Source: Macrostomum lignano
Taxonomy: Eukaryota
DNA: 64,000 nucleotides
Assembly (NCBI GenBank): GCA_002269645.1
Contig: NIVC01000289.1
Location: 49,182-113,181 of the forward strand
Direction of reading: 5' to 3'
In this document: positions 488 to 34,029 of the stretch, piece by piece
Position numbering within the stretch: the first letter of the stretch is position 1
How the letters are laid out: every line of letters starts with the position of its first letter
Position numbers and translations under genes: made by a program
Notes under the pieces: generated by a model
Database searches by the model: none
Told to the model about the DNA's origin: nothing
Seen by the model: the letters and a program-made list of their open reading frames with translations, nothing else

Positions 488-664
488 CACTGAGTATGAG
501 TGTCCTTGAGTATTTAATAGCACCAATGCTTCTCTAAGTTAATTTCATGTAGCATTTTATAAAATTTTTAATAATGAATATGGTTATTGTCACTATGGAT
601 TTAGTACATGTGCTGCAGTATATTTATATTAATATGTATAATCCCTCTAATCGCCAACCCGCAG

Positions 665-3600
665 AATCAATTCGTTCAATCGCGTATTGCATATGTCTAA
701 GGCTAGCAAACGTGCCAAGAAAAGTACGATAGTATGCCCCTACTGTGTTAGTAATCGGCCACAGAATCAGTTCAAGGGTAGCTTTGACGATTTTTCAATT
801 CACCTGCTATCGATTCACCCGGCCAATGCTCACAAACTGGAAACTATTCGTCGTTGGCACCAAGCCAAATTGGTTGATAGTAAACTATGCAAATTTTGCG
901 ACAGGTTCGAACTGAATCTAATTGCGCATTATCGATCTGCTCATCTGAGTCAGTTTGCCCAGCAGAAATCTGTTCTTACTGGAAAACATGCTACTAAAAC
1001 TGCCAGACTGAAAGCTGCTCAACGTATTGACGAGCTTCGAGCATATATATTTGATGATAAACCGTTGCCACCATATCCGCCGAGTAGTGAGGTTACTAAT
1101 GGTGAGTTTAGTTGCTATTTTTTATTATTCAAGTGTTTTTTTTATATATTTCTGCTATAAGTAAATTAGTTGACAAAAAATCAGTAATATTAATTCTATA
1201 CTGCATTTTTTTAATATTTCTACTATATGTTTAAAATTTAATAAAATTAAATAATAAATAAGAAAATATTGCTTTCTTATTTTTTATTTCTACTATAAGT
1301 AGAATAGTTAATAAAATCAATTTTATTAATTTTATACGTACAATATTTTGTTATTTTTACTGTAAGTATAGTGTCAAGGAAATGCTAACTTTAATCTATA
1401 TGTACCTTTATTTATTTTATAGATTTTTTATAGATCGAAAATTATTGAACGAAATTTTCGCCTCAAACGAAACCACTTGAGCATTTTGCTTTTTGCTTCT
1501 AACACACTCAACCCATCTCTATGGTAAACAAACATTAACAAGTCTAAATAAATTGTCATATAATTGATTGCCTACGCAGGCCCCAACATCCCGTCAACCT
1601 CGGCTGTTTCGACAACTACCGCTGGTCTGTCGTTCTCCCAGCAGCAGCAGCGGCCGCCACGGCCAATCCAGCACAGAATTTATATCAACTACGACGAGGA
1701 TAGCAGCGGCGAAGAGAACGATTGTAGCGTCGTTATGGGCGATATCTTTGCCAACAATAACGGTATTAGCAACAGTTTACCTGCCATAGACCCTGCTGTG
1801 GCTGCCGCTGCCGACTCACTGCTGCATCCGGCTGTGCTGCCCAATGAGCTGACATTTTTTGAGCACGTGGCCACTTTGTTGAAACCTACAGCTCTGCGCC
1901 CTACACGACTGCACGGCATGCTGCCGCATAGGAAAACTGTGAATCTGCATTCAAATGATTGCTGCTTACAGTATCCTTGTTTTCTAATCTCTTATTGTCT
2001 TTTGTAACGTGTCTCTTAGCACCCTTATTGTCTTCTCAATATTTCTCCTCTCCCTTCCCTGTTTCCCTCTCTCTTTCGCTGTCTCTCCCCTCTCTCTCCC
2101 CTGTCTCCCCTCTCTCTCTCCCCTGTCTCTCCCTCTCCCTCCCCTGTCTCCCCTCTCTCTCCTCTGTCTCTCCCCTCTCTCTCCCCTGTCTCCCCCTCTC
2201 CCTCCCCTCTCTCCCCTGTCTCTACCCCTCTCTCTCCTCTCGCTTCTCTGGCTCTCCCTCTCTTTCCCCTGTCTCTCCCTTGCCTTTCTCCCCTCTCCCT
2301 CCCCTTTCTCTTCTCTTTCCTTCCTCTCTCTCACTGTCTCGTCCCTCCTGCCTTCTCCGGGCTATCTCACAACATAGTTCATCTCAAATTACCAGACTTT
2401 CCCTGTCTTCATTTTGTTATCTTAAGTTAGTAAATCTTCTCTACTTAACCTCTCTTTCTCAAATTAATAGGCTTTTAATCTCACTATAACCTGAATATAA
2501 TTTTTAACCCTTAACAATTCTCTTTCCATGCTAGGCGTCGTGCCATATGGAGTTCTGCCTCACACAACAGCAGGCGGAGTCCGTGGCTTTGATGCGCACC
2601 AGAGATCCAACCACCGGCCGGTCAGTTAATGGCATGCAAATTCTGTTGCGCTGTTTCAAATCCGAGTCCGGACCGCAGGCCGATTCGTTTCCGCATTGCG
2701 TCAGCTTTTTTGTCAATAATCAGCCGGTAATGGGACTGCCCGACCCGCTGCCTTGCCGGTTTTCCGGCGCCGATCCGATTATACCAGGCGCGCCTATCGA
2801 TATTTCCGGTAGGCTGGCAGCCCTGCCGAAGAATGATTTCTGAATACTTTGCGAACTGAATTAACTAAATCATAGAATGCACAGGGGCGTGCAGGGAATC
2901 CCCAAGCAACCGTAGAGTGTACATTAGTGTCAGAGAATCCCCAGTCGACCATAGCATGTACATTGGCGTGCAGGGAATCCCCAATTAACCGTAGAATGTA
3001 CATTGGCGTGCGGGGAATCCAAATCAACCGTAGAATGTACATTGGCGTGCAGGGAATCCCCAATTAACCGTAGAATGTACATTGGCGTGCGGGGAATCCA
3101 AATCAACCGTAGAATGTACATTGGCGTGTGGGGAATTCCCAAATCAACCGTAGAATGTGCATTGGCGTGCGAGTCCGCAATCTACCGCAGAATAGAACCT
3201 TTAACACATTCACCCGCAGGTCTCTGTCGAGTTGGCAATTCTGCTATCAATCGTCTGCGAGTGAGCTGGCTACACCGAATCCTGGGCGCCGGTCACTGCC
3301 TGTCAATCACTCTGGCTCGTGTTGTCACGCCCAACGAGCTCACTAAGCGGTTGCTATCCAGTTCAAATAAAGTTCGCTCCGTCAGCGAAACTCTGCAACA
3401 GATTCGTCAACTGCTACTTATTGACGATAATAGCAACGGAGCGGATGCGGCTGTTGCCATGACAACGCTAACCGCTTCGTTGCGCTGCCCGTTGTCGCGA
3501 ACCAGAATCGAGCTTCCAGTTCGCGGCCTTGATTGTCGTCACGTGCAGTGCTTCGACGCCCGGACCTACTTGTCGATGAACGAGCGGAAGTCCACCTGGC

Positions 3601-4088
3601 GGTGCCCCTGCTGCGACCGGCCCGCCCCATTTGCCAGTCTTCGCGTCGACGCTCACTTCCAGTCAGTGCTTGCCGACGCCCCTGTCAACGTTGACTCCGT
3701 GCGTTTCCTAGACGACGGCACCTGGCAACCGATTGAAGATTCAACACCGACTGTTGGCAGTTCCGAATCCAGCGTAGCAGCGCCGGTAGGCAAGTCTAGC
3801 CTGGTGATTGACAGCATCGCCATTCCCGACGATGAAGATAGCAATGTTGAGAAAAAGGGTCCAAGCGTTACGAACAACAACAATAACAACAAGAACAAGC
3901 AGTCAAAGCGGCATGACGCATCAAAGACGCATCATGAACATCAGGCTGTCGCTCCACCAGCGGCTAAGCGAGGCCGCTTAAGTGCGCCCAGCCTTGGCAA
4001 CAGTCACCATCGGCGACGAGCTGCGAGCTCGGTGGAGCAGCTGCAGCAGCATGTGCTAACCGTGGATCTCACTGGCGACTCCGACTAA
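665..4088 (+). CDS. PIAS: PIAS-family SUMO E3 ligase (PINIT + SP-RING/MIZ finger + C-terminal SIM), 5'-incomplete
   Basis: Exons 665-1101, 1580-1938 (or -1970, see findings), 2535-2808 and 3220-4088 (TAA). Phases match at 1101/1580 (phase 1) and 2808/3220 (phase 1). The spliced protein has HPAVLPNELTFFEHVATLLKPTAL, FCLTQQQ, QILLRCF and the PINIT-equivalent PIDISGLCR. It has the SP-RING CPLSRTRIELPVRGLDCRHVQCFD...WRCPCCD and a terminal SIM-like VLTVDLTGDSD. Confidence 0.93.
2045..2350. repeat. CT-rich low-complexity/microsatellite tract in a PIAS intron
   Basis: Pyrimidine-only CTCTCCC-type repeats. Confidence 0.9.
2885..3185. repeat. 39-40 bp minisatellite (AACCGTAGAATGTACATTGGCGTGCAGGGAATCCCCAATT), about 7 copies, in a PIAS intron
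   Basis: Tandem periodicity; 13-aa repeats in the overlapping ORFs. Confidence 0.9.
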
Positions 4089-4635
4089 TTAATTCCTATA
4101 AATTTTTTCTTCAAAATCTTCAATGGATTGCATTTGACCAACATGGCTTATCAATTTGTGTTTACCAACACTTGACCCGCTAAAGAAGGTTACCTTGACA
4201 AGAATCGCTAAGGAGTCATTGCGAACAACTCACTAGTGAGTCTTGTTTACTTTTTTACGACTCAAACCACTGTCACGTGAGTTGCAGAATCGTTTAAATA
4301 GTCGCGTAAAAGTCGTCCAACAGTCGTTGTGTTGGCGCTTATCTTTCTACTGACTTAAGTAGACTAAATAGAGTTGTTATAAATATTCATAAAGTGACGC
4401 AGAAGCGTTTTAGACGCATCTCGAAGATTTTACAGCGACTCCGGTACGCCTCAGATACAACTATACGGCCCCCAGAGTCCGTTCTTGAGTCGCAGACAAT
4501 GAAACGCCTCAAATTTAATCCTAGGCGACTCTTTTGACGCCTTTCACCGTGGCATCTCGTCGTTTTAAAGTCGTCTAGAGTCGCTTCTTTCCTATTTTAC
4601 CTGTGTTATCTGCAACGAATCTGGGGCGACGCAAA

Positions 4636-5686: not shown

Positions 5687-6765
5687 GTCTGTCAGCCAGT
5701 TCAGTAGTTCATGGACCACTAGTCACTACTACGGGTGTCTGTCAGCCAGTTCAGTAGTTCATGGACCACTAGTCACTACTACAGGTGTCTGTCAGCCAGT
5801 TCAGTAGATCATGGACCACTAGTCACTACTACAGGTGTCTGTCAGCCAGTCCAGTAGTTCATGGATCACTAGTCACTACTACAGGTGTCTGTCAGCCAGT
5901 CCAGTAGTTCATGGACCACTAGTCACTACTACAGGTGTCTGTCAGCCAGTCCAGTAGTTCATGGATCACTAGTCACTACTACAGGTGTCCGTCAGCCAGT
6001 CCAGTAGTTCATGGACCACTAGTCACTACTACAGGTGTCTGTCAGCCAGTCCAGTAGTTCATGGACCACTAGTCACTACTACAGGTGTCTGTCAGCCAGT
6101 TCAGTAGTTCATGGACCACTAGTCACTACTACAGGTGTCTGTCAGCCAGTTCAGTAGTTCATGGACCACTAGTCACTACTACAGGTGTCTGTCAGCCAGT
6201 TCAGTAGATCATGGACCACTAGTCACTACTACAGGTGTCTGTCAGCCAGTCCAGTAGTTCATGGATCACTAGTCACTACTACAGGTGTCTGTCAGCCAGT
6301 TCAGTAGATCATGGACCACTAGTCACTACTACAGGTGTCTGTCAGCCAGTTCAGTAGTTCATGGACCACTAGTCACTACTACAGGTGTCTGTCAGCCAGT
6401 TCAGTAGATCATGGATCACTAGTCACTACTACAGGTGTCTGTCAGCCAGTTCAATAGTTCATGGACCACTAGTCACTACTACAGGTGTCTGTCAGCCAGT
6501 TCAGTAGATCATGGACCACTAGTCACTACTACAGGTGTCTGTCAGCCAGTTCAGTAGATCATGGACCACTAGTCACTACTACAGGTGTCTGTCAGCCAGT
6601 CCAGTAGTTCATGGATCACTAGTCACTACTACAGGTGTCTGTCAGCCAGTCCAGTAGTTCATGGACCACTAGTCACTACTACAGGTGTCTGTCAGCCAGT
6701 TCAGTAGATCATGGACTACTAGTCACTACTACAGGTGTCTGTCAGCCAGTCCAGTAGTTCATGCA
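5687..6765. repeat. 50-bp tandem repeat (ACAGGTGTCTGTCAGCCAGTTCAGTAGTTCATGGACCACTAGTCACTACT), about 21 near-identical copies
   Basis: Exact 50-bp period with no spacers. Confidence 0.97.
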
Positions 6766-8157: not shown

Positions 8158-8234
8158 CTAAGTACGTGAGCAGATCCTACTCGTAACTGGACTAAGAACG
8201 TTTTTAGGCTGGGACATAGTATGTACGGTAAAGC

Positions 8235-8620
8235 TCTGTGACTCTTACAAATTTAACTCAGCTTTCAATTCAATTCAGCAGAGCCAGAATCTATCAGATG
8301 TTGAGATGTTCTCGTATCTCCAAAGCTGCTTTAGAGGCGAAAAAGAAGTTGTGCATTGAGAACCTTCAATTTACAGCTTGCGATTACCATGCACACTATA
8401 CCTGCATGGGAGCTGCTGGAGGACCGGTACAGATCGGTAGACAACTTAGTTCACCACTTTATGAAGACGCTCCAGGCAGCTCGCTGTGTGCATGGATCAG
8501 ATTAAAAAACATAGCCTTTCGAGCTTCTGCAGACCCCTGTGTGTGAATATACGAAGTTCTGCTAATGCCTTATTTGGAAGCCAAACTGCCCGGCTCTGTC
8601 TGAGAATATGTAACTGCGCT
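8235..8620 (+). mobile_element. Degenerate BEL/Pao LTR-retrotransposon gag fragment (DUF1759-like)
   Basis: Across frameshifts the sequence reads FNSAFNSIQQSQNLSDVEMFSYLQSCFRGE / IENLQFTACDY / AWELLEDRYRSVDNLVHHFMKTLQ / YEVLLMPYLEAKLP. This matches the LSDVEKF.YL...AWELL.ERY...LP signature of BEL/Pao Gag. Confidence 0.75.
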
Positions 8621-9360
8621 CAATTCTGACTTCCACCAAGGACTCAAATTAGGGCCAGCTACGGATCGAGTGGACGCAGCTGTCAACTCTGCTGCTATCC
8701 TCAAATAGCTCGATCCTACGCAGCTTGAGCGGCTCTCCAGCTCAAACATACCCAAGGAAGTGCTGCCTTGCATGACGAGTTAAAATTACATCGCGCTCGC
8801 TGTATCACGTGTTGCACACAGCTTCTCTCCTGGACAGGCTGGCAAGGAGCTCCGGCCGGGTGAGCACAACTTTTTTGGAGAGGCGTCTGTTGCGGAGTTT
8901 GACCACTCGATCTTCAGGGTCAACTCTTCGTTACACTAAAGTAAAAATCAGGTAAAAAAGGTGTTGTGTTACAGTACACTGAGCTTGCATTGATCAATGT
9001 TCAAAAGGCTTGAACGCGTATATTATTTATTTATGCAAAGAAAATGGTCGAATACATCTCCGTTTATACTGGAGGAGGCGCTTGAAGATTTGCGCGACCA
9101 CTGCCGCCTCAACGGCTGCGCAATTGTTAATGAGCATGCAGTCTGACGCCAATTAGTGAATCGGGTATGTTATGCTTTCATCCTCACCTCAATTGGGCAT
9201 TTACTTTCATCGCAAAATAAGATTCCATGCAGTGTCTGCTGGCCGTCGGCTCCGCTATGATGCGATTTACGATGATGACGCTATTGGGACATGCATGTGG
9301 CTGCTCCTCGCGCAGGGCGCTGGTCTGTCTCAAGTTAAGCTACAAATGTAGCTACCAGCA

Positions 9361-15035: not shown

Positions 15036-16954
15036 TAGGCCTATTAACATTATTTTAATTTATCTATGTTAATGTTGTTACTTATTATATATATACAATG
15101 ATAATAAAAGAAATAAAACCAATAAATATTTAATATTGAGCTTATTAATAACTTAATATAAGGCCTATATCGAATGTAAGTATGATACTGAATAATATTG
15201 GCAAGCTTCTAGATAGAGCAGTTTATAGATAAATGAATTTAGTAGGCCTAGCTAAAGCCATAGATAGAGCAATATAACAGGCAATAAAAGTAGCAATAGA
15301 TGGAATGGTAAATAGAGCAGTAGATAAAGTGATAGATAGAGCAGTAAATAAAGTGATATCTAGACTAGTAGATAAAGTGATTGAACAATAGAGGATAAAG
15401 CATTTTCTAATGCCATTTTAATCCCTTTTGGCCATAGACATCATTTTCTACTATGGCACTACCACTATATTGCAGCACTGATTCAAACTTAAAATTAATA
15501 TCAAGAAACAAACTGCCAAAATATTATAGTCACAAATAGTGATTATTGCAAATCTTGACTTTTTTGAAATCCTAAAACCAAGATTAAGATAAAAAAATGC
15601 CAAGATCTTCACAATTAAGATTAAAATTGATATCTTGTCTGACCCTTATAATTTATGGCATATATCAGTGTAGATCATAAATATATATATTGTGATTATG
15701 TATCAAAACAATCATCCTTTAATATCCTTTATATTATCCTTTATTATGCTATTATTTTCCATGGCAAAGGCTTCATTTTTAACTATAAATATTATGTTTT
15801 GTGTTACAAAACTTTAAATTGACATTTTTTGTTTTTTTAGAAATAAAAGTTATAATATATACTAACATTTATTAATTTCAAAAACCTTTGAAAAAGCTTA
15901 AAAGTAACATTTATATTAGGACTATGCCATAGTCAAGAACATGTCTACTGTACATCAGAACATTTTTGGACAAAAATGCACCAAGAAAGGATACCCTATC
16001 CTCCAAAATTTAGTTATTATTCATTAGTTGTCATTATAACTACTTCTACCACTTCTTCTAATTATAGCCATATCCCTAATAAAAAAGCAGTATAAATTAG
16101 ATGATTTACCATTTTGGGTCAACCACCTTGCTGGCTATCAATATCTATGCCCAACTTTGAAATTTCACTTAGCCAATATGATTTAGTTTTCCCAAAAATT
16201 GCAACTTAGCTTGCCTCTAGTTGCCCTTCAGTTGCCTCTGGTTACAATTTAGTTACCTCTAGCTACAGCTAATATTACCTCTATATATTCTTTGTTTTTG
16301 TCTATTTCCCTGTATTTTTTCTTTCTTGCCTCTTTTTATTTTTTTCCTATATCCCCCTCTTTTTTGTCCAATTCTTTGGGTTGGCATTTTTGCAACTTGA
16401 AAAACCTTGAAAAAATAACTTACCAAATTGGCTGGCTTAGCCAAGTGTAGGGCAGCAGGATGGAATTCTTGTTCAGAGAAAGGGAAATGCGTGCGCATGT
16501 TTTTGGAGCAGCATGCAAGTGCGCACGCCAGCTAAAAATAAGAGAACTTGAGCGCGCATAACCATGTTGTATGCAAATTTTATCAAATTTTAACAATCTA
16601 AGTATTTTGTGTACATTTGCTACTATTTTTGCTTTTCAATTATGCAATTACGGGTAAGGCAACAAAAAAGAAAATGACACATTTTATATTCATAAAAATA
16701 ATATTGCTTTGTATATTTTTGAGTACATGTATACAACTGTATATTTTTGTTTTAATAAGAACTTTTAATTGTTTAGAAAAAGAGAAAAACTTGCATAAAT
16801 GACAATTTTAGTACAGTAGGTTTTTTATCATATTTAGTATAGTTTGATTGATGTATATTGTCGCGGAATTCAAATCGAAATGTAGCATTTCATTACATGT
16901 TTAATTAAAATAATGATTTTTCTTTGCCTTTCCTGCAAGTTACATGTAGCTATA

Positions 16955-17199: not shown

Positions 17200-19366
17200 T
17201 AGCTAGATGTACATTCAACCCTCTCTATGCTGCGTCATCCCACCTTCAATTCTGTCCTTTTCTCTCTGGCCTGCATGCCTAGGTACAAGTACAAACCTCC
17301 ACTCTTGTTTTTCTATCTGCCCCGCACTTCATGTACGCTAGGCCTATTATTAGTGTCCCATCATTCTAAAATTCAAGACAAATATAAGTTTTGTTGCACT
17401 AAGCGTGCTGGTGGGCTTGTCTGTTTGTGGGTATTGCCTGTGAGAGTGCTGTAATTGTTTACGCATTATATAGCATATGATTTATTGAGTCAAACTTCTT
17501 GACAAGTAATTGTACATGCATTTTGGTTCCTTTCAACTTGTGTATAAATGCTAGTCAGATGTTACAGTCGGCATTACACAAGGTGGCCCAACTGTGGTTT
17601 AACATAATTTTTTTGGCACTGAACTATGCTTCTAAACCCACTATTTAAATATCCAGGGATGGTACGTAGATCATATGCAAGTGGACATGCCACAATCTTT
17701 AAATACTTAAGACACGATTTTGTTGACTAAATGTTAGATTATAGAGCTAATGGGTGGGAGGCACCAATTGATCTTTGTTTGCAACTGCAAGGCTTTATTT
17801 TTTGCCTCCCCACCACCTGTGTCCAGTGCAACGTCAAGAAGAATGCAAACAGCTTGACCAGCTTCTTCAAAGACTAGTTGAACTGTGTATAATTGTTTTA
17901 TAAGTGCTGCCTCATCCAGAATACAGCTGTCATAATAGCGTACATCAGTTTCAACTTTAAAAACCTGCTGGAGGTGCAAATTCTCTTCAATTTTTATGGA
18001 ATTAATGATTTGGCCCTTAATTGGCTTTTTGACTTGGAACATACAAGTCACTATATCCCATACAGAGCAAGGTTACCCCAAAAGAGGGATTCAATAACAT
18101 TCTTGTACTTTATATGTATGTAACTATGGTTTCCAAGTATCAGTTCCAAAAATACGAGTAATATCCTTTTCATATATTCTCTTTTATATATGGTAGTTTT
18201 ACCTATATAAATAATATTCTGATTACAAAAGCATTAAAATTTATAAATGACACCTGCTTATTAAAAACCTGATTAAACACTTTGATAAGGCTATTTTTGT
18301 AGTGTAGAGAAGCAGACCCACACTAGAACCATATAAAGAAGTAGAGATATAAGTGTGATCTGTCATTGGATTTTTCTTTCTTTTTCTTTATTCGATTGTA
18401 TATTTATATAATAAAATCTATACACTAGTTTTGTACTGTCTGTCTGTCTTTGATTTTTTTGACAACCATCAGGCTATTTTTTTCAAATTGTAATTATTTA
18501 GCAATCATGCATAACTTTTTTGATAAAAAATTCAAATTGAAAGTGGGTAAAATATTTGAAAACAATTTTTTTATGCTTTCAATTGGCATTGTTTCTAAAT
18601 TAAATTGTTCAGTTCAACCATTTAGGCCTCTTCCTGGCCTTAGTATGTACATTAACAATAAAGCTAAGAAGTTTTTTGGCCCCTCATGTGGCAAGTTCAC
18701 CATTTACCAGTCTAATAGACACACAATAAAGGAGGGGGTAGGGGTTTAAAGCTGGCCTGAAATGCATGCATTGTGCATATTTTATTGACCCCCAAAAACT
18801 GCTCTGATCTTGTTTGTGTTATTTTACAACACATGGTAGCACAGTTGCAGATAGTGGCAAGCTAGTAGGCCCAACTAATTCAGATTCATTTGGCAAATTG
18901 GTATTTAAATTTATACTAATTGGAAATGGGTCAAATATAAAAAAACAATGTTTTCTAATGATTTCATTGTTTGAAGTCTGAATTTAGGGCTTAGTGCATA
19001 TTAGGCATATATTTAGTAGTGCACTAGTAAATAATAAATATATAGGATACATTATTATAGTACATTCTAATTTATTTTATAAATATAGTACATTCTAAAT
19101 ATAGTAAATATAGTAAATTATAGTACTTTCACAGGGTTGTACTATAACTATAATACTAATTAATTAATTTCAGTCTTAAGTCCAACGCTCTAACTAACCA
19201 CTAGGCTATGAATTATCAATACCATAAAAATTCAAAAAGTATTTCAAATCTTGTTTGAAGTTATTCTTAAAGTGCATGCGAACTAGTTATTCTCATGTAT
19301 GATAAATCTACTAAAACTTAACAATTGCTGCCTGCAGACATCAGCTGTAATAAAAATTGCGACACC

Positions 19367-22300
19367 ATGCTTCGGCCTGGCAACAAAAAGAAACGCCGTA
19401 TCCTGATGCTCGACCAGCTTCCCTCGGTTATTCTCGCTCGAGTATTTTCCTATTTGAACCAGCAGACCCTGCTAGAGTGCATGCTAGTGTGCAAGTCATG
19501 GCACAAATTGATATTAAGCGAACCGCAGTGCTGGCGCTCGCTGAGAATTTGCACTAGCGATCTGACCGATGCTTTAGTTGGACAACTGTGCACCGGAGTC
19601 TGTCCGGGACTTGTCAGGTTAGAGATCTACTCAGCTGATTGGCCAGAGCCACCACAGCAGCCAGGGCTGGATCGCAATGCTAGGAAAGCGCTTGTTAGGC
19701 GCCTGTTCAAGTCTTCGGAATCATTGAAATCGTTCAGTTTAAGACTGTGCTGTTGTAGGCATAGTAATGCTATAAAGGTATGATATGTAGAGTTTGATAT
19801 TCTCATTTTATTGAGTATTGATGCCAAATATTTTCTAGATAGTCTAGGAATTATCTAAACATATCATTAGCAATCATCCATAAATCTCACTAAGAACTTT
19901 TTAAAAATCTCAATGAGAATCGCCTGAAAATCTCGTTGAGAATCGTCTGAAAACCTCATTGAAAATCGTCTAAAAATCTCAATGAGAATGGTCTGAGAAT
20001 CTCAATGAGAATCATTTAAAATCTCATTAAGAATCGTCCTAAAATCTCAGTGAGAATCGTCTGATAATCTCATAGAGAATCGTCTAAAAATCTCAGTAAA
20101 AATCGTCTGAGAATCTGATTGAAAATCGTCTAAAAATCTCAATGAGAATCATTTAAAAATCTCATTGATAATCGTCTGAGAATCTCAATGAGAATCGTCT
20201 TAAAATCTCAATGAGAATCGTCTGAAAATCTCAGTGAGAATCGTCTGAGAATCTCAATGAGAATCATTTAAAATCTCATTAGGAATCGTCCTAAAATCTC
20301 AGTGAGAATCGTCTGATAATCTCATAGAGAATCGTCTAAAAATCTCAGTAAAAATCGTCTGAGAATCTGATTGAAAATCGTCTAAAAATCTCAATGAGAA
20401 TCATTTAAAAATCTCATTGATAATCGTCTGAGAATCTCAATGAGAATCGTCTTAAAATCTCAATGAGAATCGTCTGAAAATCTCAGTGAGAATCGTCTGA
20501 GAATCTCAATGAGAATCGTCTAAAAATCTCATTGAGAATCGCCTGAAAATCTCAGTGAGAATCGTCTGAGAATCTCATTGAGAATCGTCTGATAATCTTA
20601 ATGAGAATCGTCTTATAAATCTTGCTAAGAAATCGTCTTAAAATCTCACTGACAATGTCCCTTAATCTCTAGAGAACATTAGACAAATCTTTGGAAGACT
20701 GTCTTTAATCGTTTTTAAAATCTTCTACCAAACAGACAAGTCGGTCCGGCAGTGTCAGCGGCGGCGGCACCAGTGTCGATTGGCTGTCGCCCGACACCAT
20801 TCTGAGTCAGCTGGCGCGCAAAGGCGGTCGCGCTAGCACGCTGTATTCACTGACGCTGCGCGCCGAACGGCTGACAGATTCAGGAGTGAAAAAACTCACC
20901 GGCGGTGCCGGGTGCGCGCAGCTGCGGCGGCTGCACCTGACGGCCTGTCATCGGCTGACTGACTCGGCCCTGGCTGGCCTGACCGCATCTGCGCCTTTGC
21001 TGCACTGCCTGCACATTGTTGACTGTCCGCTGGTGAGCACCGGGCTGGGGAGACGCAGCGGTGCTTGTTTCCACTGATTTTTATAGTCACATGTTACAGC
21101 CTCTTACATCTTCAGATTGAGCTCTCATTACTGATTCTCAGTTGCTGAGCCCATCTCCCAGATCCTCAGTTGCTGAGCCCATCTCCCAGATCCTCAGTTG
21201 CTGAGCCCATCTCCCAGATCCTCAGTTGCTGAGCCCATCTCCCAGATCCTCATTTGCTGAGCCAGTCTCCCAGATCCTCGAATGCTGAACCAATCTCCCA
21301 GATCCTCAGTTGCTGAGCCCATCTCCCAGATCCTCAGTTGCTGAGCCCATCTTCCAGATCCTCAGTTGCTGAGCCCATCTCCCAGATCCTCAGTTGCTGT
21401 GCCCATCTCCCAGATCCTCAGTTGCTGAGCCCATCTCCCAGATCCTCAGTTGCTGAGCCCATCCCCCAGATCCTCAGTTGCTGAGCCCATCTCCCAGATC
21501 CTCAGTTGCTGAGCCCATCTCCCAGATCCTCAGTTGCTGAGCCCATCTCCCAGATCCTCAGTTGCTGAGCCCATCTTCCAGATCCTCAGTTGCTGAGCCC
21601 ATCTCCCAGATCCTCAGTTGCTGGGCCAGCCTCCCAAATCCTCAGTTACTGGGCAGCCTCCCAGCCCCCAGACTTGCTACGAGTACTAATGCCATTAAAC
21701 TGTCAGATCCTCGAACTACCTGATCCCCAAACTTTCACATCACAGAACTCACTAAGACTTTCCACGCGACTCTCATCAGTATCTACAGTGGATGCAACAA
21801 TCACGCACAACCGCCCCCCCCCCGCTCCTCCAGATATCTGAGCGCGGGCTGCAGCGCCTATCCAGTGGCCGCGGCAAAGATGGCGGAAACGCGGCCTGCT
21901 GCCTTCGCGAGCTGACTTTTGCCGGTCAGCACCGGCTGGCGGATCAGGCCAAGGCCGCCCGCGTTATCGGCGACATCGGCAGCTGCCTTGAACGATTGTC
22001 TTTGGACAGCTGCTCGCCGCACTGCACCCTGTCCTGTGATCAGTCTATGCTGGGCGGATTCCAGTGCCTGACTCAGCTGAGACTGACGGCTCTGTGCTTC
22101 ATTGGCGATCCGGGGCTCGCGGTGCTGGCCAAGTGCTGTCCTGGTGAGTCATTAGCGCAGTCACTTTCCTGTGCTGCTGGTTGCTCGGTTATGCGGTTAT
22201 GGGTCTTGGGGATCTGGGAGGCAGTGGCCCAGCAACAGAAGATCTGGGAAGCTGGTGGCCCAGCAACTGAGGATCTGGGAGGCTGGTGGCACAGCAACTG

Positions 22301-25300
22301 AGAATCTGGGAGGCTGGTGGCCCAGCAACTGAGGATCTGGGAGGCTGGTGGCACAGCAACTAAGAATCTGGGAGGCTGGTGGCACAGCAACTGAGGATCT
22401 GGGAGGCTGGTGGCACAGCAACTAAGAATCTGGGAGGCTGGTGGCACAGCAACTGAGAATCTGGGAGGCTGGTGGCACAGCAACTGAGGATCTGTGAGGC
22501 TGGCCCAGCAACTGAGGATCTGGGAGGCTGGTGGCACAGCAACTAAGGATCTGGGAGGCTGGCCCAGAAGCTGAGGGTCTGGGAGGCTGGCCAAGAAGCT
22601 GAGGATCTGGGAGGCTGGCCCAGAAGCTGAGGATCTGGGATGCTGGACCAGTAACTGAGGATCTGGGAGGCTGGCCCAGCAACTGAGGATCTGGGAGGCT
22701 GGCCCAGCAACTGAGGATCTGGGATGCTGGACCAGCAACTGAGGATCTGGGAGGCTGGCCCAGCAACTGAGGATCTGGGAGGCTGGCCCAGCAACTGAGA
22801 ATCTGGGAAGCTGGACCAGCAACTGAGGATCTAGGAGGCTGGCCCAGAAGCTGAGAATCTGGGAGGCTGGCCCACTGCAGCCAATGCGTTACACATTACC
22901 ATATCCAAATTGCACTGTACCGCAAGGCCTTCGCATCCTGGAGCTGCTCTGCGGCCCCACTAATCACTGCATCACGGACCTGGGCGCAGCAGTATTGGCC
23001 TCAGTCGCAGTCAGCCACAGGACAGCTGCGGCAGCGTCAGCCGCGGTTTCGCCGCCAGCTGCTGAGTCAACTGGCCTGCAAGAGCTCACCCTGCCGTGCA
23101 ATCTGCTCACGCCTAAAGGTTACCACAGCCTGGGCAGTCTGGGACCGGGCCTAGCTAAACTGTGCCTGAGGTACTGCTCAGCCGGTGCAGACCGGGGCAT
23201 GGCCACGATGCCTCTGAGCCTGACTGGATTGCGGCATCTGGAGGCCACCGCCTCGGCCAGATGCGGTGGCGAAGAGGCTGCCCTTTTCGCCGGACTAGAG
23301 ATGACTCGTCTAGTGGAATGTTGCGCCAGTAATCTGCGGATACTTCGAGTGGTGTCCAATTGCGATCAGCACGGAGCCGGAGGCGGAGGCGGCAACGGCT
23401 CTGTGGGCTTGGGCCCGGCTGCGCTGGCTAAAGCGGCCGCACGGTTGAGCTTAGCGGAACTTCGCGAGCTCACTCTGTCCCCGTGCGACTCGCTAACTGA
23501 GACTTGCGTAGCTCAACTGTTGCGGGCCTGTCCCCAGCTTAGGCACGTTAGCCTGGGACCTGATATTAAGGTGAGAGGTTTATTTTTTGATTTAGTTGCA
23601 CTTTCTTAATGCCATATCCCATCCCTAATCGGTAGATTCCATCCCTAATCCGTAGTTTCCATCCCTAATCCGTAGATTCCATTCCCAAACGACTGATCCC
23701 ATCCCTAATCAACTGATCCCATCCCTAATCGGCATATCCCATCCCTAATCGGTAGATTCCATTACCAAACGACTGATCCCATCCCTAATCCACTGATCCC
23801 ATCCCCAATCCACTGATCCCATCCCTAATCCACTGATCCCATCCCTAATCGGCATATCCCATCCCTAATCGGTAGATTCCATTACCAAACGACTGATCCC
23901 ATCCCTAATCCACTAATCCAATCCCTAATCGACTGATCCCATTCCTAATCGACTGATCCCATTCCTAATCGACTGATCCCATTCCTAATCGACTGATCCC
24001 ATCCCTAATCGACTGATCCCATCCCTAATCGACTGATCCCATTCCTAATCGACTGATCCCATTCCTAATCGACTGATCCCATACCTTATCGAGTGATTCC
24101 ACCCTCATAACTTAGATTCCACTCTTACAGAGACCGATCGTTTTCGTATTAGCCAGATCCCATTCCTAATCGACTGATCCCATACCTTATCGAGTGATTC
24201 CACCCTCATAACTTAGATTCCACTCTTACAGAGACCGATAGTTTTCGTATTAGCCAGATCCCATTCTCATTAGCCAGATCCCATTCTCATTAGCCAGATC
24301 CCATCCTCATTAGCCAGATCCCATTCTCATTAGCCAGATCCCATCCTCATTAGCCAGATCACATCCTGATTAGCCAGATTCCATTCTCATTAGCCAGATC
24401 CCATCCTCATTAGCCAGATCCCATCCTCATTAGCCAGATCCCATCCTGATTAGCCAGATTCCATTCTCATTAGCCAGATCCCATTCTCATTAGCCAGATC
24501 CCATCCTCATTAGCCAGATCCCATTCTCATTAGCCAGATCCCATTCTCATTAGCCAGATCCCATCCTGATTAGCCAGATTCCATTCTCATTAGCCAGATC
24601 CCATTCTCATTAGCCAGATTCTATCGTTAGCCAGATCCCATTCTCATTAGCTAGATCCCATTATCCCAATTAGCCAGATCCCAATATCCCAAATAGCCAG
24701 ATCCCATTATCCCAATTAGCCAGATACCATTATCTCAATTAGCCAGATCCCATTATCCCAATTGGCCAGATCCCATTACCCCAATTAGCCAGATTCCATT
24801 ATCCTAATTAGCCAGATCCCATTATCCCAATTAGCCAGATGTCATCTTAATTAGCCAGATGCCATCCCTATTAGCCAGATGCCATCCCTATTAGCCAGAT
24901 GCCATCCCAATTAGCCAGACCCTATCCTCATGTGCCAGACCCCATCCTTAATAGCCATACCCCAACCCCCCAAACAACCGCATTTGTGCGCAGGTAAGCC
25001 AGGTATCCATCAGGCTGATGATCCGCGACACAAACCTGTCAATTGTTCGGCCCCTAATTGGCTGGTACCTTCGCTCCGACACAATCTGCTACCGGGACCT
25101 GCTGCATCTGGAACTGATACAAGCCATTCGACCGGAAAGATTTTGCTTCATAACGGACAACTTGTTGACCTTTATTGGTCAGAGGTGTCCGAGTCTGAGA
25201 CTGTTGAGATTGGAACCGTGCACTCTAGTCACTGATCAGGGTATTAGGATGCTGGCTCCTTGTCGGAGACTGCAACGACTGCATCTGAGCGGCTGTGAGC

Positions 25301-29029: not shown

Positions 29030-30945
29030 ATTGGATTGTGACAGGTAGTGATAGATTAGTGACAGGTGGGGATAGATTAGTGACAAGTGGGGATAGATTA
29101 GTGACAAGTGGGGAAAGATTAGTGACAAGTGGGGAAAGATTAGTGACAAGTGGGGATAGATTAGTGACAGGTGGGGATAGATTAGTGACAGGTGGGGATA
29201 GATTAGTGACAGGTGGGGATAGATTAGTGACAAGTGGGGAAATGATTTATGACAGGTGGGGATAGATTAGTGACAGGTGGGGATAGATTAGTGACAGGTG
29301 GGGATAGATTATTGACAAGTGGGGAAATGATTTATGACAGGTGGGGATAGATTAGTGACAGGTGGGGATAGATTAGTGACAGGTGGGGATAGATTAGTGA
29401 CAGATGGGGATAGATTAGTGACAAGTGGGGATAGATTAGTGACAAGTGGGGATAGATTAGTGACAGATGGGGATAGATTAGTGACAAGTGGGGATAGATT
29501 AGTGACAAGTGGGGAAAGATTAGTTACAGGTGGGGATAGATTAGTGACAGATGGTGATAGATTAGTGACAGGTGGGGATAGATTAGTGACAGATGGTGAT
29601 AGATTAGTGACAGGTGGGGATAGATTAGTGACAGGTGGGGATAGATTAGTGACAGGTGGGGATACATTAGTGACAGGTGGGGATAGATAAGTGACAAGTG
29701 GGGTTAGATTAGTGACAGGTGTGGATAGATTAGTGACAAGTGGGGATAGATTAGTGACAGGTGGGGATAGATTAGTGACAGGTGGGGATACATTAGTGAC
29801 AGGTGGGGATAGATTAGTGACAGGTGGGGATAGATTAGTGACAGGTGGGGATAGATTAGTGACAGGTGGGGATACATTAGTGACAGGTGGGGATAGATTA
29901 GTGACAGGTGGGGATACATTAGTGACAGGTGGGGATAGATAAGTGACAAGTGGGGTTAGATTAGTGACAGGTGTGGATAGATTAGTGACAAGTGGGGATA
30001 GATTAGTGACAGGTGGGGATAGATTAGTGACAGGTGGGGATAGATTAGTGACAGATAGTGATAGATTAGTGACAGGTGGGGATAGATTAGTTACAGGTGG
30101 GGATAGATTAGTGACAAGTGGGGATAGATTAGTGACAAGTGGGGATAGATTAGTGACAAGTGGGGATAGATAGTGACAAGTGGGGATAGATAGTGACAGA
30201 TGGTGATAGATTAGTGACAGGTGGGGATAGATTAGTGACAGATGGTGATAGATTAGTGACAGGTGGGGATATATTAGTGACAGGTGGGGATAGATTAGTG
30301 ACAGGTGGGGATAGATTAGTGACAGATGGGGATAGATTAGTGACAAGTGGGGATAGATTAGTGACAAGTGGGGATAGATTAGTGACAGATGGGGATAGAT
30401 TAGTGACAAGTGGGGATAGATTAGTGACAAGTGGGGAAAGATTAGTTACAGGTGGGGATAGATTAGTGACAGATGGTGATAGATTAGTGACAGGTGGGGA
30501 TAGATTAGTGACAGGTGGGGATAGATTAGTGACAGTTGGGGATAGATTAGTGACAGGTGGGGATAGATTAGTGACAGGTGGGGATAGATTAGTGACAGGT
30601 GGGGAGGTGGGGATAGATTAGTGACAAATGGTGATAGATTAGTGACAAGTGGGGATAGATTAGTGACAGGTGGGGATAGATTAGTGACAGATGGGGATAG
30701 ATTAGTGACAAGTGTGGATAGATTAGTGACAGATGGGGATAGATTAGTGACAGGTGGGGATAGATTAGTGACAGGTGGGGATAGATTAGTGACAAGTGGG
30801 GAAAGATTAGTTACAGGTGGGGATAGATTAGTGACAGATTGGGATAGATTAGTGACAAGTGGGGATAGATTAGTGACAAGTAGGGATAGATTAGTGACAG
30901 GTGGGGATAGATTAGTGACAGGTGCTGACAGATCAGTGACAGATT
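29030..30945. repeat. 21-bp minisatellite (GTGACAGGTGGGGATAGATTA), about 90 copies, ending about 100 bp upstream of the RRM gene ATG
   Basis: 7-aa periodic ORFs on both strands; 252-bp higher-order duplication (29691 vs 29943). Confidence 0.97.
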
Positions 30946-31048
30946 AGCGACTCATAGCCGCACCCTAACCTGAACGGTTGCAGCGCATTCGGATTAAGAG
31001 ATTATCCGTTCTCTCAACTCTCAGTTGACGGCCCCGAAATTCAACATC

Positions 31049-32104
31049 ATGGTGAAACTATTCGTCGGCAATATCAACGATCCCCGGTCGGACATGGAAG
31101 ACCGGCTTCGATCGGCATTCGCAGCCTACGGCCTGGTGACCGAGTGCAGTTTAATGCGCGACTACGCCTTCGTGCACATGGACTCGGAGCTGGCCGCTAG
31201 AGAGGCTGTCAGGCGGCTGCACGGCTCCCTAATTGGCAATTGCCGCGTGAATGTGGAATTCAGCCGCAGCTCCGGCGATAGAAGAGGAGGCAGCGCCGCC
31301 TCAGGCGGGAGGCGGGGCGGCGGCGGCGGTGGCAGCGGCGCGTCCTCGGCCGCTCTGGTGGCTTCCATGCAGCAGCGTCAGCAACAGCAGCAGCAGCAGC
31401 AACAGCAAATGCCGCAGCAGTCGCACCTGACTCACCTGCCGCCGCCGATAGCTTTCGACTCTTCCGGCGGAGGTGGAGGCGGAGGCGGAGGCGGAGGCGG
31501 TGGGATCGGCAATTTATTTGTTGGCAACGGCCTGGGCCCGGTCACTTATCAGCAAATGCAGCAGAACCAGCAATATCAGCAGTATTATAACTATTATAAT
31601 GGCAATAATAGCAATGTTATTATTAGTAGTAGCGGTGGTACTATTACTACTAATAATGCTACTAATGGGATTCTTGGCGGCAGCAGCGGCGGTTTCAATT
31701 CGGCCAGCGTGCCGCCATTGGGCGGTATTGGCTTAGGCATCGGGGGCTTGGATCTGCAGCCCCAGCAGCAGCCCATTGTGTCCAACAGCTTCGGCCTATC
31801 GCCATTCCCTACCGGCCAGCAGCCTCAACAATCCACCAATGTGTTGTCTAGCAGACCCACTACTACAGCTGCTACTAACGGTAGTAACAATAGTAGCTCA
31901 GTAAATGCCAACAGTCACAATACCAGTCTGAGGTTTGTCGGCGTCTCGGCGACCGCCGCACCCGGCGGACCCGTGGTGCTGACGCCGACTACTACAACGG
32001 CAAACCGGCAATTTCCCGGAGCTGCGGTCAGCGGCGGCGGCGGGAGCATCACTGCCGAACGAGATGTTCGCCGATACCATCCCTATGTGGATGGGCCGAG
32101 ATAA
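31049..32104 (+). CDS. Intronless RBM4/Lark-like single-RRM protein with G/Q/N/Y-rich low-complexity tail (351 aa)
   Basis: MVKLFVGNI (RNP2)...ECSLMRDYAFVHMD (RNP1)...INVE-like VNVEFSRS resembles RBM4 RRM1. It is followed by polyG, polyQ and QQYQQYYNYYNGNNSN. A C-terminal RRYHPY fits a PY-NLS. Confidence 0.88.
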   Translation: MVKLFVGNINDPRSDMEDRLRSAFAAYGLVTECSLMRDYAFVHMDSELAAREAVRRLHGSLIGNCRVNVEFSRSSGDRRGGSAASGGRRGGGGGGSGASSAALVASMQQRQQQQQQQQQQMPQQSHLTHLPPPIAFDSSGGGGGGGGGGGGGIGNLFVGNGLGPVTYQQMQQNQQYQQYYNYYNGNNSNVIISSSGGTITTNNATNGILGGSSGGFNSASVPPLGGIGLGIGGLDLQPQQQPIVSNSFGLSPFPTGQQPQQSTNVLSSRPTTTAATNGSNNSSSVNANSHNTSLRFVGVSATAAPGGPVVLTPTTTTANRQFPGAAVSGGGGSITAERDVRRYHPYVDGPR

Positions 32105-32469
32105 TCCTGTTGGGCAGCTGATGCTCTTGGTTCAATTGTGATTGATTGATTTATTACCAGTGCATGCCTGGCGTTTATGAAATGTATTTTTTTATAAATC
32201 CTATTTGGCTCTTTCACTGCTGCCAGCGGGTTATTGTTGTTTGACGAGACTGAGAGGCTTGTGGGTCTTTTTTTAATCTGCATTTTCTAAGACTAGCAAA
32301 ACTCGTTGTTGAATTGTTGACTATTTGTTGAATGTGCGTTTATTTCTACAGTTATAGATTAACAATTCGACTCGAAATCGTATTAGATTTACGCAAAAGG
32401 AGCCTGTTTCATAACTGCATTCTCTGAGAAGATTGTGAAAAGTGTTTAATTCACCACTTACCTCAAAGT

Positions 32470-33320
32470 GTACTCAGTTGCTGGGTCGGCCTCCAAGATC
32501 CTCAGTTGCTGGGCCAGCCTCCCAGATCTATAGTTGCTGGGCCAGCCTCTCAGATCCTCAGTTGCTGGGCCAGCCTCCAAGATCCTCAGTTGCTGGGCCA
32601 GCCTCCCAGATCCTCAGATGCAGGGCCAGCCTCTCAGATCCTCAGTTGCTGGGCCAGCCTCCAAGATCCTCAGTTGCTGGGCCAGCCTCCCAGATACTCA
32701 GTTGCTGGGCCAGCCTCCCACATTCTCAGTTGCTGGGCCAGCCTCCCAGATTCTCAGTTGCTGGGCCAGCCTCCCAGATCCTCAGTTGCTGGGCCAGCCT
32801 CCCAGATTCTCAGTTGCAGGGCCAGCCTCCCAGATTCTCAGTTGCAGGGCCAGCCAGCCTTCGAGATCCTCAGTTGCTGGTCCAGCCTCCCAGATTCTCA
32901 GTTGCTGGGCCAGCCTTCGAGATCCTCAGTTGCTGGGCCAGCCTCCCAGATCTTCAGTTGCAGGGCCAGCCTCCCAGATCCTCAGTTGCTGGGCCAGCCT
33001 CCCAGATCCTCGGTTGCTGGGCCAGCCTCCCAGATCCTCAGTTGCTGGGCCAGCCTTCCAGATCCTCGGTTGCTGGGCCAGCCTCCCAGATCCTCAGTTG
33101 CAGGGCCAGCCAGCCTTCGAGATCCTCAGTTGCTGGTCCAGCCTCCCAGATTCTCAGTTGCTGGGCCAGCCTTCGAGATCCTCAGTTGCTGGGCCAGCCT
33201 CCCAGATCTTCAGTTGCAGGGCCAGCCTCCCAGATCCTCAGTTGCTGGGCCAGCCTCCCAGATCCTCGGTTGCTGGGCCAGCCTCCCAGATCCATAGTTG
33301 CTGAGCCAGCCTCCCAGATA
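32470..33320 (+). repeat. 28-bp minisatellite (CTCAGTTGCTGGGCCAGCCTCCCAGATC), same family as in FBXL introns 2 and 3
   Basis: Tandem periodicity with a higher-order block of about 256 bp (32851 vs 33107). Confidence 0.95.
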
Positions 33321-34029
33321 TTCATTTTCTGGGCCACTGTCTCGCGTCACAACTAAAGCATCAATGGCTGCTGTATGAAACGGCCTCCTTACTAGCAGAA
33401 TAAAATTAATCAATCATGAACTGATCAATATAGCATACAATGCGACGATTTGTGATGAACAGAAGCTACAATAGCACTGCCAGTGTACACACAAACACAC
33501 TCTCTCCCTGACTCTGCCCATTTTTCTTTGTTAGCCTGCGTGTTTGATAGCGTCCAATGAATGAACCTGCTAACCCTTAACCCCTCTCGTTTCTGTCAGC
33601 TCTGAGACGGGAATTTAATAGTACTTGACTTGCTTATGTACTATCATAATTATGCAGACATGTTGCTTCTTCTGTCTGCTGTCTACTGACTGTATTTTCT
33701 GTTTTTTTTTCTTAAGCTCTGCTTGTCAGATTTGCTTGCGTATGAGTAACAAAAATGAATTGCAAAATGGATTTTATTTCAGCTGCAGTGCTGCAATAGA
33801 CTTAAATGGCTTTAGTTTGCTTGGCATTACGAGCCTATTGTTCAATTAGAACAATGAACGTTTAGCGTGCTAAACCGCTATAACTACTTCGTAGGCGTCT
33901 GTCTGTTGAGTTTTGCGCTATTGTTTTGAATTTGTTTTATAAATTGTATAAATCTCTTTCTACGCGCCACCTGAGCTAACCCAGTATATCTTCGATACAG
34001 CTCCTAGCAACTCTTTGTCGCTGCTTTGT

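Follow-up and report, generated by a model that had tools for sequence, protein, structure and literature searches.

In major-class (U2-type) introns, the donor consensus MAG/GTRAGT (here and below, a slash marks a splice boundary) is complementary to U1 snRNA, and the branch site, of the form yUnAy, lies 18–40 nt 5′ of the AG and is followed by a pyrimidine tract. The donor of minor-class (U12-type) introns reads RTATCCTT, and their branch site reads TCCTTRAC. In these introns, the optimal distance from the branch site to the AG is 11–13 nt, and a pyrimidine tract is typically absent (PMC3584512). The intronIC program scans positions −55 to −5 for branch sites (PMC7367187). The closest described systems that combine both sets of signals are the twintrons and staggered sites of the Drosophila genes prospero and dUrp and of the vertebrate gene SRSF10; overlapping U2 and U12 introns, as well as a U12 isoform targeted by NMD, have been documented (PMC3584512; PMC6865273). 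Introns have been documented to change from the minor to the major class when a cryptic U2 donor close to the former U12 donor becomes active (PMC3584512). Among flatworms, the snRNAs of the minor spliceosome are present in Schistosoma (PMC2770079) and Schmidtea (PMC6312358), and the consulted portion of a pan-eukaryotic minor-intron survey names Schistosoma only.

The window analyzed here was the final 64 kb of contig NIVC01000289.1 of Macrostomum lignano. The corresponding assembly, Mlig_3_7, is PacBio-based, reads from Illumina DNA sequencing and from RNA-seq were used to polish it, and its gene annotation was built by genome-guided RNA-seq assembly using StringTie and TACO (PMC5730564). 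The intron under study belongs to the gene BOX15_Mlig012589g1 (product PAA86255.1), called at 18960–22382 of locus L002, which corresponds to positions 666–4088 of the window. Joining the four exons given in Table 1 (the last one without its stop codon, 3220–4085) yielded a protein of 645 aa identical to GenBank entry PAA86255.1 from the same contig, and this exact match fixed both junctions of intron 2. In common with the PIAS/Siz SUMO E3 ligases, the protein contained a PINIT domain (PF14324, E-value = 2.8 × 10−9) and an SP-RING/MIZ domain (zf-MIZ, PF02891, E-value = 1.6 × 10−21), whereas no SAP domain was matched in the Pfam scan (E-value ≤ 0.01), and the N-terminus, encoded by exon 1, carried two C2H2-like Cys/His motifs instead. 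The identity with insect PIAS3 was 33–34%, with approximately half of the protein aligned. Divergent PIAS-like genes formed a tandem pair, and this pair was found on three M. lignano contigs. BOX15_Mlig012589g1 is predicted to encode a PIAS-like SUMO E3 ligase specific to its lineage. As regards repeats, intron 3 contained a 39-nt tandem array (2871–3171), and a CT-rich minisatellite (2044–2340, + strand) occupied the middle of intron 2 and differed in length among copies (+199 nt in L001). Several large ORFs elsewhere in the window were translated minisatellite arrays and were not considered genes.

Table 1. Features of the PIAS-like gene and of its intron 2 (positions in the 64-kb window).
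Feature	Position	Strand	Details
Exon 1	666–1101	+	Annotated CDS 5′-partial from 666; first ATG at 693
Intron 1, U2-type	1102–1579	+	ATG/GTGAGT...ACGCAG/G
Exon 2	1580–1938	+	Phase 0; 3′ end CAT AGG AAA ACT (HRKT); start of PINIT domain (LTFFEHVATLLKPT...)
Intron 2, GT-AG, 596 nt, phase 0	1939–2534	+	Both junctions from exact protein match
Exon 3	2535–2808	+	PINIT core, ASCHMEFCLTQQQ...IDIS-G
Intron 3, U2-type, phase 1	2809–3219	+	CCG/GTAGGC...CCGCAG/G
Exon 4	3220–4088	+	End of PINIT, SP-RING/MIZ zinc finger, acidic and Asn-rich tail; stop TAA at 4086–4088
U2 donor in annotated use, ACT/GTGAAT	1939–1944 (intron bases); 1936–1944 with ACT	+	
Pyrimidine-rich tract AATTCTCTTTCCATGCT and acceptor AG	2516–2534	+	Tract itself 2518–2527; AG 2533–2534
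GTATCCTT, perfect match to U12-type 5′ splice-site consensus	1971–1978	+	Identical in L001 (8094) and L003
CCCTTAAC, with U12 branch-site core CCTTAAC (2509–2515)	2508–2515	+	Core 7/7

The deposited RNA-seq-guided model splices intron 2 exactly at 1938/2535, and both the intron and its junction are thus already known in public annotation. Translation across this join reads ...PHRKT/ASCHMEFCLTQQQ..., with the frame open through PINIT and SP-RING, and the corresponding sequence ...RKT/ASCHMEF... was found in two homeologous copies (P0001 and P0014) and in three UniProt models (P0015–P0017). The donor ACT/GTGAAT agreed with the major-class consensus at positions +1, +2, +3 (R), +4, and +6 and deviated from it at −2, −1, and +5. 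It was the weakest among the six donors of the gene and its paralogue, the other five being GTGAGT, GTAGGC, GTAAGT, GTGAGA, and GTGAGT; this donor appears weak yet usable. Between positions 1880 and 2000, it was the only GT compatible with the frame. At the 3′ end of the intron, TTAAC (2511–2515) was followed by the pyrimidine tract and the AG in the arrangement characteristic of U2-type introns, and removal of the intron, with its GT...AG ends, gave the in-frame annotated mRNA.

The octamer GTATCCTT matched the U12-type 5′ splice-site consensus at 8/8 positions. It was located 32 nt within annotated intron 2, so that a join from it to the acceptor common to both donors does not keep the frame. 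In all three copies, the annotated splice was at 1938/1939, i.e., 32 nt upstream of the octamer. The element CCCTTAAC had a perfect U12 branch-site core, although its A2514 was 20 nt from the AG at 2533–2534, with the tract TTCTCTTTCC in between and no other AG or AC between 2516 and 2534; the TTAAC within it also fits the U2 pattern yUnAy. Joining 1970 to 2535 shifted the reading frame, giving ...CCLQRRAIWSSASHNSRRSPWL with 19 codons past the junction and a stop codon TGA (2590–2592) in exon 3, located 216 nt 5′ of the last exon junction. Variants of a U12 intron that would keep the frame were also considered and rejected: the sole frame-restoring acceptor, 2533/2534, would leave an intron ending in TA, all acceptors 5′ of 2532 read into the in-frame TAG at 2532–2534, and the next frame-compatible AC or AG was at least 49 nt from the branch site. 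The origin of the intron ends from a transposon or repeat was rejected as well, since the unique sequence at either end of the intron matched nothing but the three homeologous copies.

Both U12-like motifs were about as frequent in the window as expected by chance: GTATCCTT was observed twice (1.83 expected according to shuffles), and CCTTRAC was observed 11 times (15.2 expected). The second occurrence of the octamer (15987–15994, minus strand) lay in an apparently non-coding, AT-rich stretch and was not followed by a branch-site motif; it was taken as chance. For the genome as a whole, hundreds of occurrences of GTATCCTT alone within introns are to be expected. The joint layout was scored as the octamer within an intron plus the branch-site core with its A 8–25 nt from the AG, and its probability was 3 × 10−6 to 9 × 10−5 per intron (first-order Markov estimate). 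The annotation of M. lignano comprises 72,846 genes (×4.9), i.e., approximately 357,000 annotated introns (PMC5730564), and approximately 1–30 introns with such a layout are consequently expected per genome. It should be noted, as a counterpoint to a purely U2-type view, that an 8/8 donor and a 7/7 branch-site core within one intron are rare, at 1 × 10−5 to 1 × 10−4 per intron, and that the octamer adjoins the weakest of the six U2 donors, a setting in which competition would matter. At the same time, a normal U2 branch site in a C/T-rich intron may mimic a U12 branch site, which calls for caution in motif-based intron calls.

Taken together, these data suggest that 1939–2534 is probably an ordinary major-class (U2-type) GT-AG intron of phase 0 and that its U12-like motifs are fortuitous. 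The major spliceosome would join 1938 to 2535 using the weak donor ACT/GTGAAT, and the branch site in use would be TTAAC (A2514), with the pyrimidine tract and the AG 20 nt downstream. The octamer GTATCCTT would then be a chance resemblance to a U12 5′ splice site, and the putative U12 branch site would be the U2 branch site of the intron itself, which in this C/T-rich sequence happens to follow two C's. From this, we infer that the major class is the acting one and that the U12-like site is either unused or used only as noise. Of the interpretation given in the earlier note, the PIAS-like gene with a PINIT domain (borne out by the PF14324 and PF02891 matches), the in-frame junction 1938/2535 (confirmed by translation and by the deposited model), the weak U2 donor at 1939, the perfect U12 motif at 1971, the match to a U12 branch site 20 nt from the AG, and the frameshift with a stop after about 19 codons all stood. 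Its headline, according to which a U12 intron misses the frame by one base and competes with the U2 donor, was not supported. Since the intron is already annotated and its motifs fit chance, the finding is of little consequence as it stands.

The frame offset of the octamer would be explained if the assembly lacked one base just 5′ of 1971 and the intron were in fact a true in-frame U12 intron, and PacBio-based assemblies can carry indel errors. Nevertheless, an identical 32-nt segment was found in three separately assembled copies differing elsewhere by SNPs and indels, homopolymers in 1939–1970 were never longer than 3 nt, polishing had been performed with both Illumina DNA and RNA-seq reads, and the RNA-based models use 1938/2535. 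Moreover, the repaired protein would gain 11 residues (VNLHSNDCCLQ) absent from the paralogue: the segment from “KP” to “L..QQ” has 25 residues in both paralogues under the 1938/2535 join, and the donor at 1970 adds 11. The missing base proposed in the earlier note is hardly credible and is effectively refuted by the same 32-nt offset in two further genomic copies. Another reading, according to which a former U12 intron was converted to U2 use through a nearby cryptic U2 donor, with the U12 signals persisting as relics, follows the documented route mentioned above, and the weak donor ACT/GTGAAT looks “young”. Evidence against this comes from the upstream tandem paralogue (P0003; approximately 61% protein identity over the shared region), the exon structure of which reproduces its protein exactly. 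In the same alignment column, it has a phase-0 intron with strong U2 signals, CAG/GTGAGA...TTGACTTCAG/G, and neither RTATCCT nor CCTTRAC is present in this intron. The position of the U2 donor, being exactly common to so divergent a paralogue, predates an old duplication; perfect U12 motifs would need to have persisted without use from a time preceding it, and unused motifs would not remain perfect so long. In addition, the 32-nt offset is not divisible by three, and upstream acceptors reach the in-frame TAG already described. PIAS genes are not known as minor-intron genes: the tables of minor-intron genes examined for human and mouse listed SRSF10, MAPK8, and PTEN but none of PIAS1–4 and ZMIZ1–2, and PIAS3 of the moth Pieris had no intron at the corresponding position. 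Thus, the comparison of intron position in PIAS relatives, which the earlier note had suggested, revealed no conservation of the U12 class at the paralogous or orthologous position, and conversion in progress is a scarcely plausible reading of this locus.

It is also possible, although unlikely, that the minor spliceosome recognizes both motifs in some transcripts, giving a 1970/2535 join, and that the mRNA with TGA at 2590 is degraded, either as noise or as a switch that would reduce how much PIAS-like ligase is made; a parallel is the Drosophila dUrp twintron, in which NMD destroys the U12 isoform. Both core motifs are perfect, the rival U2 donor is weak, the premature stop 216 nt before the last junction is a classical NMD configuration, and the documented overlapping introns with an NMD-targeted U12 isoform provide precedents. 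Related flatworms possess U11, U12, U4atac, and U6atac snRNAs, so the minor machinery may exist in M. lignano and could recognize the site. All three homeologous copies preserve the layout; however, these are approximately 98–99% identical within intron 2, which makes them too similar for their agreement to count and uninformative on selection for the motifs. The paralogue is without the motifs, the distance of 20 nt from branch site to AG is well past the optimum, and the layout is within the genome-wide chance expectation. Furthermore, there is no annotated product of 1970/2535, and products of 1970/2535, 1970/2534, or intron retention were not found in a collection of 15 billion proteins; it should be noted that the examined tables of the deposited annotation give a single product for each gene, and a minor unproductive isoform would, therefore, not show there. 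The literature search found no paper on U12 introns or the minor spliceosome in Macrostomum. Within the 64-kb window, as distinct from the genome, neither snRNAs nor tRNAs were detected (Rfam gathering scan and ARAGORN). A protein search with residues 1–169 of human SNRNP35, a query verified with chain C of PDB 8R7N, gave 1,221 matches, and the best 120 of these were all from vertebrates. A bolder form of the same idea, in which a newly arisen pair of U12 sites inside an old U2 intron is truly used and, through the nonsense mRNA, minor-spliceosome activity tunes the level of the PIAS-like ligase, is very improbable. If true, it would represent the second natural de novo birth of a U12 intron, after the Drosophila dUrp twintron; a U12 join both used and conserved would mean a rare de novo origin of a minor intron together with unproductive minor splicing. 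M. lignano is a regenerating flatworm, and the U12 join could be tested in it by transgenesis and RNAi.

Compared with the known systems, intron 2 shares with the twintrons and staggered sites of prospero, dUrp, and SRSF10 the presence of both signal sets and a shared 3′ end. The branch site of the SRSF10 minor intron, CCCCTTAACA, resembles CCCTTAAC of M. lignano, and the U12 isoform of the dUrp twintron is unproductive (PMC3584512), like the hypothetical U12 product considered here. In prospero, the U12 sites form the outer pair and both products are in frame, unlike in intron 2. For the known twintrons, dual use has been established experimentally and is accompanied by cross-species conservation, whereas in M. 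lignano the two sets of signals coexist at the sequence level. With U12-type GT-AG introns, intron 2 has in common the perfect octamer, the perfect CCTTAAC core, and a branch site inside the range scanned by intronIC; it differs from them in that the octamer is away from the annotated exon boundary and splicing there breaks the frame, in the 20 nt (vs. 11–13 nt) between branch site and AG, in the presence of a pyrimidine tract, and in the non-U12 intron of the paralogue. Its differences from a standard U2 GT-AG intron are an unusually weak donor and a perfect U12 octamer 32 nt downstream of it, whereas the likeness comprises the GT...AG ends, TTAAC approximately 20 nt from the AG, the pyrimidine tract, phase 0, a junction present in the RNA-seq-based model, and a position common to the unambiguously U2-type intron of the paralogue.

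The public annotation already includes the intron at 1939–2534, a U2 intron whose donor is weak; it belongs to one member of a tandem pair of PIAS-like genes in the free-living flatworm Macrostomum lignano. The 645-residue model of the window gene (exons 666–1101, 1580–1938, 2535–2808, and 3220–4085) was an exact match to GenBank PAA86255.1 (BOX15_Mlig012589g1); therefore, the RNA-seq-guided model uses the join of base 1938 to base 2535 (1938/2535). Illumina DNA and RNA-seq reads had been used to polish the PacBio/Canu assembly Mlig_3_7 (GCA_002269645.1), and its gene models were obtained with StringTie and TACO by genome-guided RNA-seq assembly (PMC5730564). The window (the final 64,000 of the contig's 113,181 bases) starts at position 18295 of L002, the locus on contig NIVC01000289.1, and its positions 500–4300 were 100% identical to L002. 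The cluster of PAA86255.1 also contained GenBank models P0001 and P0014 from other contigs and UniProt models P0015–P0017, which presumably derive from ML2, an independent annotation; all five read ...RKT/ASCHMEF... at the junction. In a domain scan, the protein matched PINIT (E = 2.8e-9) and the SP-RING/MIZ finger (E = 1.6e-21) but gave no SAP match. Its N-terminus (window 693–1000) carried two C2H2-like motifs, CPYC...H(x4)H and CKFC...H(x4)H; such a pair without a SAP domain is an unusual architecture for the PIAS family. The annotated gene start, 666, directly follows ...CCAACCCGCAG (AG at 663–664), with the first ATG (693) 27 nt downstream, and the sequence at window 655–693 looks like a spliced-leader trans-splice acceptor, a mode of splicing reported for ~39% of M. 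lignano genes.

The window was dense with long minisatellite tandem arrays (units of 14–50 nt, many with 20–75 copies), which fits the unusually high repeat content reported for the M. lignano genome. Several of the largest "ORFs" (e.g., 43000–44457, 29309–30430, and 32442–33356) were rejected as genes, being translated arrays with artefactual weak Pfam matches. The extreme base skew at 34000–36000 (GC skew −0.61, AT skew −0.49) was due to arrays rich in C and T that repeat with periods of 14 nt and 273 nt. One long open frame contained a DOCK-C2 domain (E = 3.6e-43), which points to part of a DOCK-family exchange-factor gene, and another contained an RRM (E = 2.6e-9).

Coordinates of PIAS-like genes, arrays, and domain-bearing open frames (window positions unless a locus is named)
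Feature	Coordinates	Strand	Basis
Called gene BOX15_Mlig012589g1	L002 18960–22382 = window 666–4088		gene call
Exons of paralogue P0003	L002 10001–10988, 11709–12031, 13014–13284, 13781–15009		structure reproduces protein exactly
Tandem PIAS-like pair, window contig	L002 10001–15009 and 18960–22382		
Tandem PIAS-like pair, second contig	L001 1303–3389 and 6856–10380		
Tandem PIAS-like pair, third contig	L003 691–5780 and 10001–13776		
Tandem arrays	1–486; 2871–3171; 5687–6763		
More than 20 further arrays	19.9 kb–64 kb, e.g., 29034–30942, 42972–44686, 39766–40833		
DOCK-C2 and RRM open frames	40893–42989 and 31025–32101	+	domain matches
(CCTGT)n array	36229–36913		

The earlier note had interpreted the intron as carrying full U12 signals; its sequence statements (motif positions, 20-nt spacing, and the frames of both joins) were all correct on rechecking, whereas its interpretation was supported only in part. 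The U12-type donor octamer GTATCCTT lies at 1971–1978 and the U12-like branch motif CCCTTAAC at 2508–2515, and the first AG or AC past the latter is the AG at 2533–2534, 20 nt from A2514. Codons start at 1936 in the exon 2 frame and at 2535 in the exon 3 frame. As had been claimed, the 1938/2535 join keeps the PINIT frame (...LPHRKT/ASCHMEFCLTQQQ..., 636 open codons from ATG 693), and the 1970/2535 join shifts it (...VNLHSNDCCLQ/RRAIWSSASHNSRRSPWL), with a stop at TGA 2590–2592, 216 nt upstream of the last exon junction. The donor ACT/GTGAAT, rightly described as poor, was weaker than the other five donors of the window gene and its tandem paralogue P0003 (GTGAGT, GTAGGC, GTAAGT, GTGAGA, and GTGAGT), and it was the sole frame-compatible GT within 1880–2000. 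The intron is 80% C+T, and its CT-rich minisatellite (2044–2340; L001 ~8170–8660) differs in length among the homeologous copies, being 199 nt longer in L001 and nearly equal in the window and L003. TTAAC at 2511–2515 agrees with yUnAy, the pattern of U2 branch sites; its distance from the AG is typical of U2 introns, and a pyrimidine tract comes next. Judging from these splice signals and the annotated junction, the major spliceosome most likely acts here: it would excise 1939–2534 from the weak donor, with branching at A2514 followed by the tract TTCTCTTTCC and the AG.

GTATCCTT occurred twice in the window, both strands counted, versus 1.83 expected from dinucleotide shuffles; the second copy (15987–15994, minus strand), in an AT-rich stretch that lacks exon-like surroundings and is not followed by a U12 branch motif, is a chance occurrence illustrating the background rate. 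CCTTRAC occurred 11 times versus 15.2 expected. When either the intron or the window served to train first-order Markov models, GTATCCTT had a probability of 1.3e-3 to 2.7e-3 within the first 60 nt of an intron and of ~1–2.5e-2 anywhere in 560 nt; for a CCTTRAC core whose A lies 8–25 nt from the AG, the probability was 2–4e-3. The joint layout probability was 3e-6 to 9e-5 per intron, which, multiplied by the annotated 72,846 genes × 4.9 introns (PMC5730564), gives ~1–30 introns per genome, an estimate that is conservative. If TTAAC is the working U2 branch site, the sole "extra" is the two preceding C's in this C+T-rich intron. In a related vein, the intronIC authors took introns that are unlikely to be of the U12 type and used the most U12-like motifs in them to build the matrix for U2 branch sites (PMC7367187). 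The motif pair falls inside the genome-wide chance expectation, and the U12-like motifs are probably chance, or noise at most.

A true in-frame U12 intron with one base missing from the assembly near 1971 is extremely improbable, and the missing base is effectively refuted. The gene is present in three separately assembled copies (window, L001, and L003), all with both U12-like motifs and an equal length of the GTGAAT-to-GTATCCTT segment, although otherwise distinct in SNPs and in the 199-nt array difference. The 32-nt segment before GTATCCTT contains no homopolymer longer than 3 bases, and the repaired frame would add 11 residues, whereas 1938/2535 leaves 25 residues between "KP" and "L..QQ" in both the window protein and the paralogue. 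The conversion of a former U12 intron to U2, said to be in progress and to have left the U12 signals as relics, is very unlikely, and P0003 speaks against it. This second PIAS-like gene (936 aa; ~61% identity across the shared PINIT/SP-RING part) precedes the window gene by ~4 kb on its contig and recurs on two other contigs, consistent with the large-scale duplication known in the M. lignano DV1 line. As solved on L002, it has both PINIT-region introns at the window-gene positions; its intron 2 shares the alignment column and phase of 1938/1939 (QQQ/AHCDLEF vs. RKT/ASCHMEF), therefore the U2 position is older than an old duplication, too long a time for U12 motifs out of use to remain perfect. 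That intron has strong U2 signals (CAG/GTGAGA...TTGACTTCAG/G) and contains no RTATCCT, CCTTRAC, or TCCTTRA. Moreover, acceptors upstream of 2532 in the present sequence all run into the in-frame TAG 2532–2534, the lepidopteran PIAS3 gene (Pieris locus L004) lacks an intron here, and PIAS1-4 and ZMIZ1-2 are absent from human and mouse minor-intron gene tables in which the positive controls SRSF10, MAPK8, and PTEN are present (PMC6717393).

Real but unproductive U12 use of 1970/2535 is unlikely. Six alternative products (three, each with and without a 9-residue 5' extension) were looked up by exact sequence, and neither form of the truncated 1970/2535, in-frame 1970/2534, or intron-retention product had an exact match in a 15-billion-protein collection. 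Minor spliceosomes are low in abundance and work slowly, and U2 splicing takes out the U12 donor; both points argue for a minor role at most. The branch-to-AG spacing of 20 nt, far past the 11–13 nt optimum (PMC3584512), argues likewise. There were no Rfam matches within the 64-kb window, no paper was found on the minor spliceosome of Macrostomum, and the best 120 of 1,221 matches in the SNRNP35 protein search were all vertebrate. However, Schistosoma is documented to have minor-spliceosome snRNAs (PMC2770079), as is the planarian Schmidtea, where their expression has also been shown (PMC6312358). This machinery may well exist in M. lignano too; in that case, some low-level use could be made of a U12 donor and branch core that are both perfect. 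Staggered major and minor splice sites have been described (PMC6865273), and the closest documented analogue of such unproductive use is the Drosophila dUrp twintron, cited as the sole observed newly arisen U12 intron, whose U12-dependent isoform is destroyed by NMD (PMC3584512).
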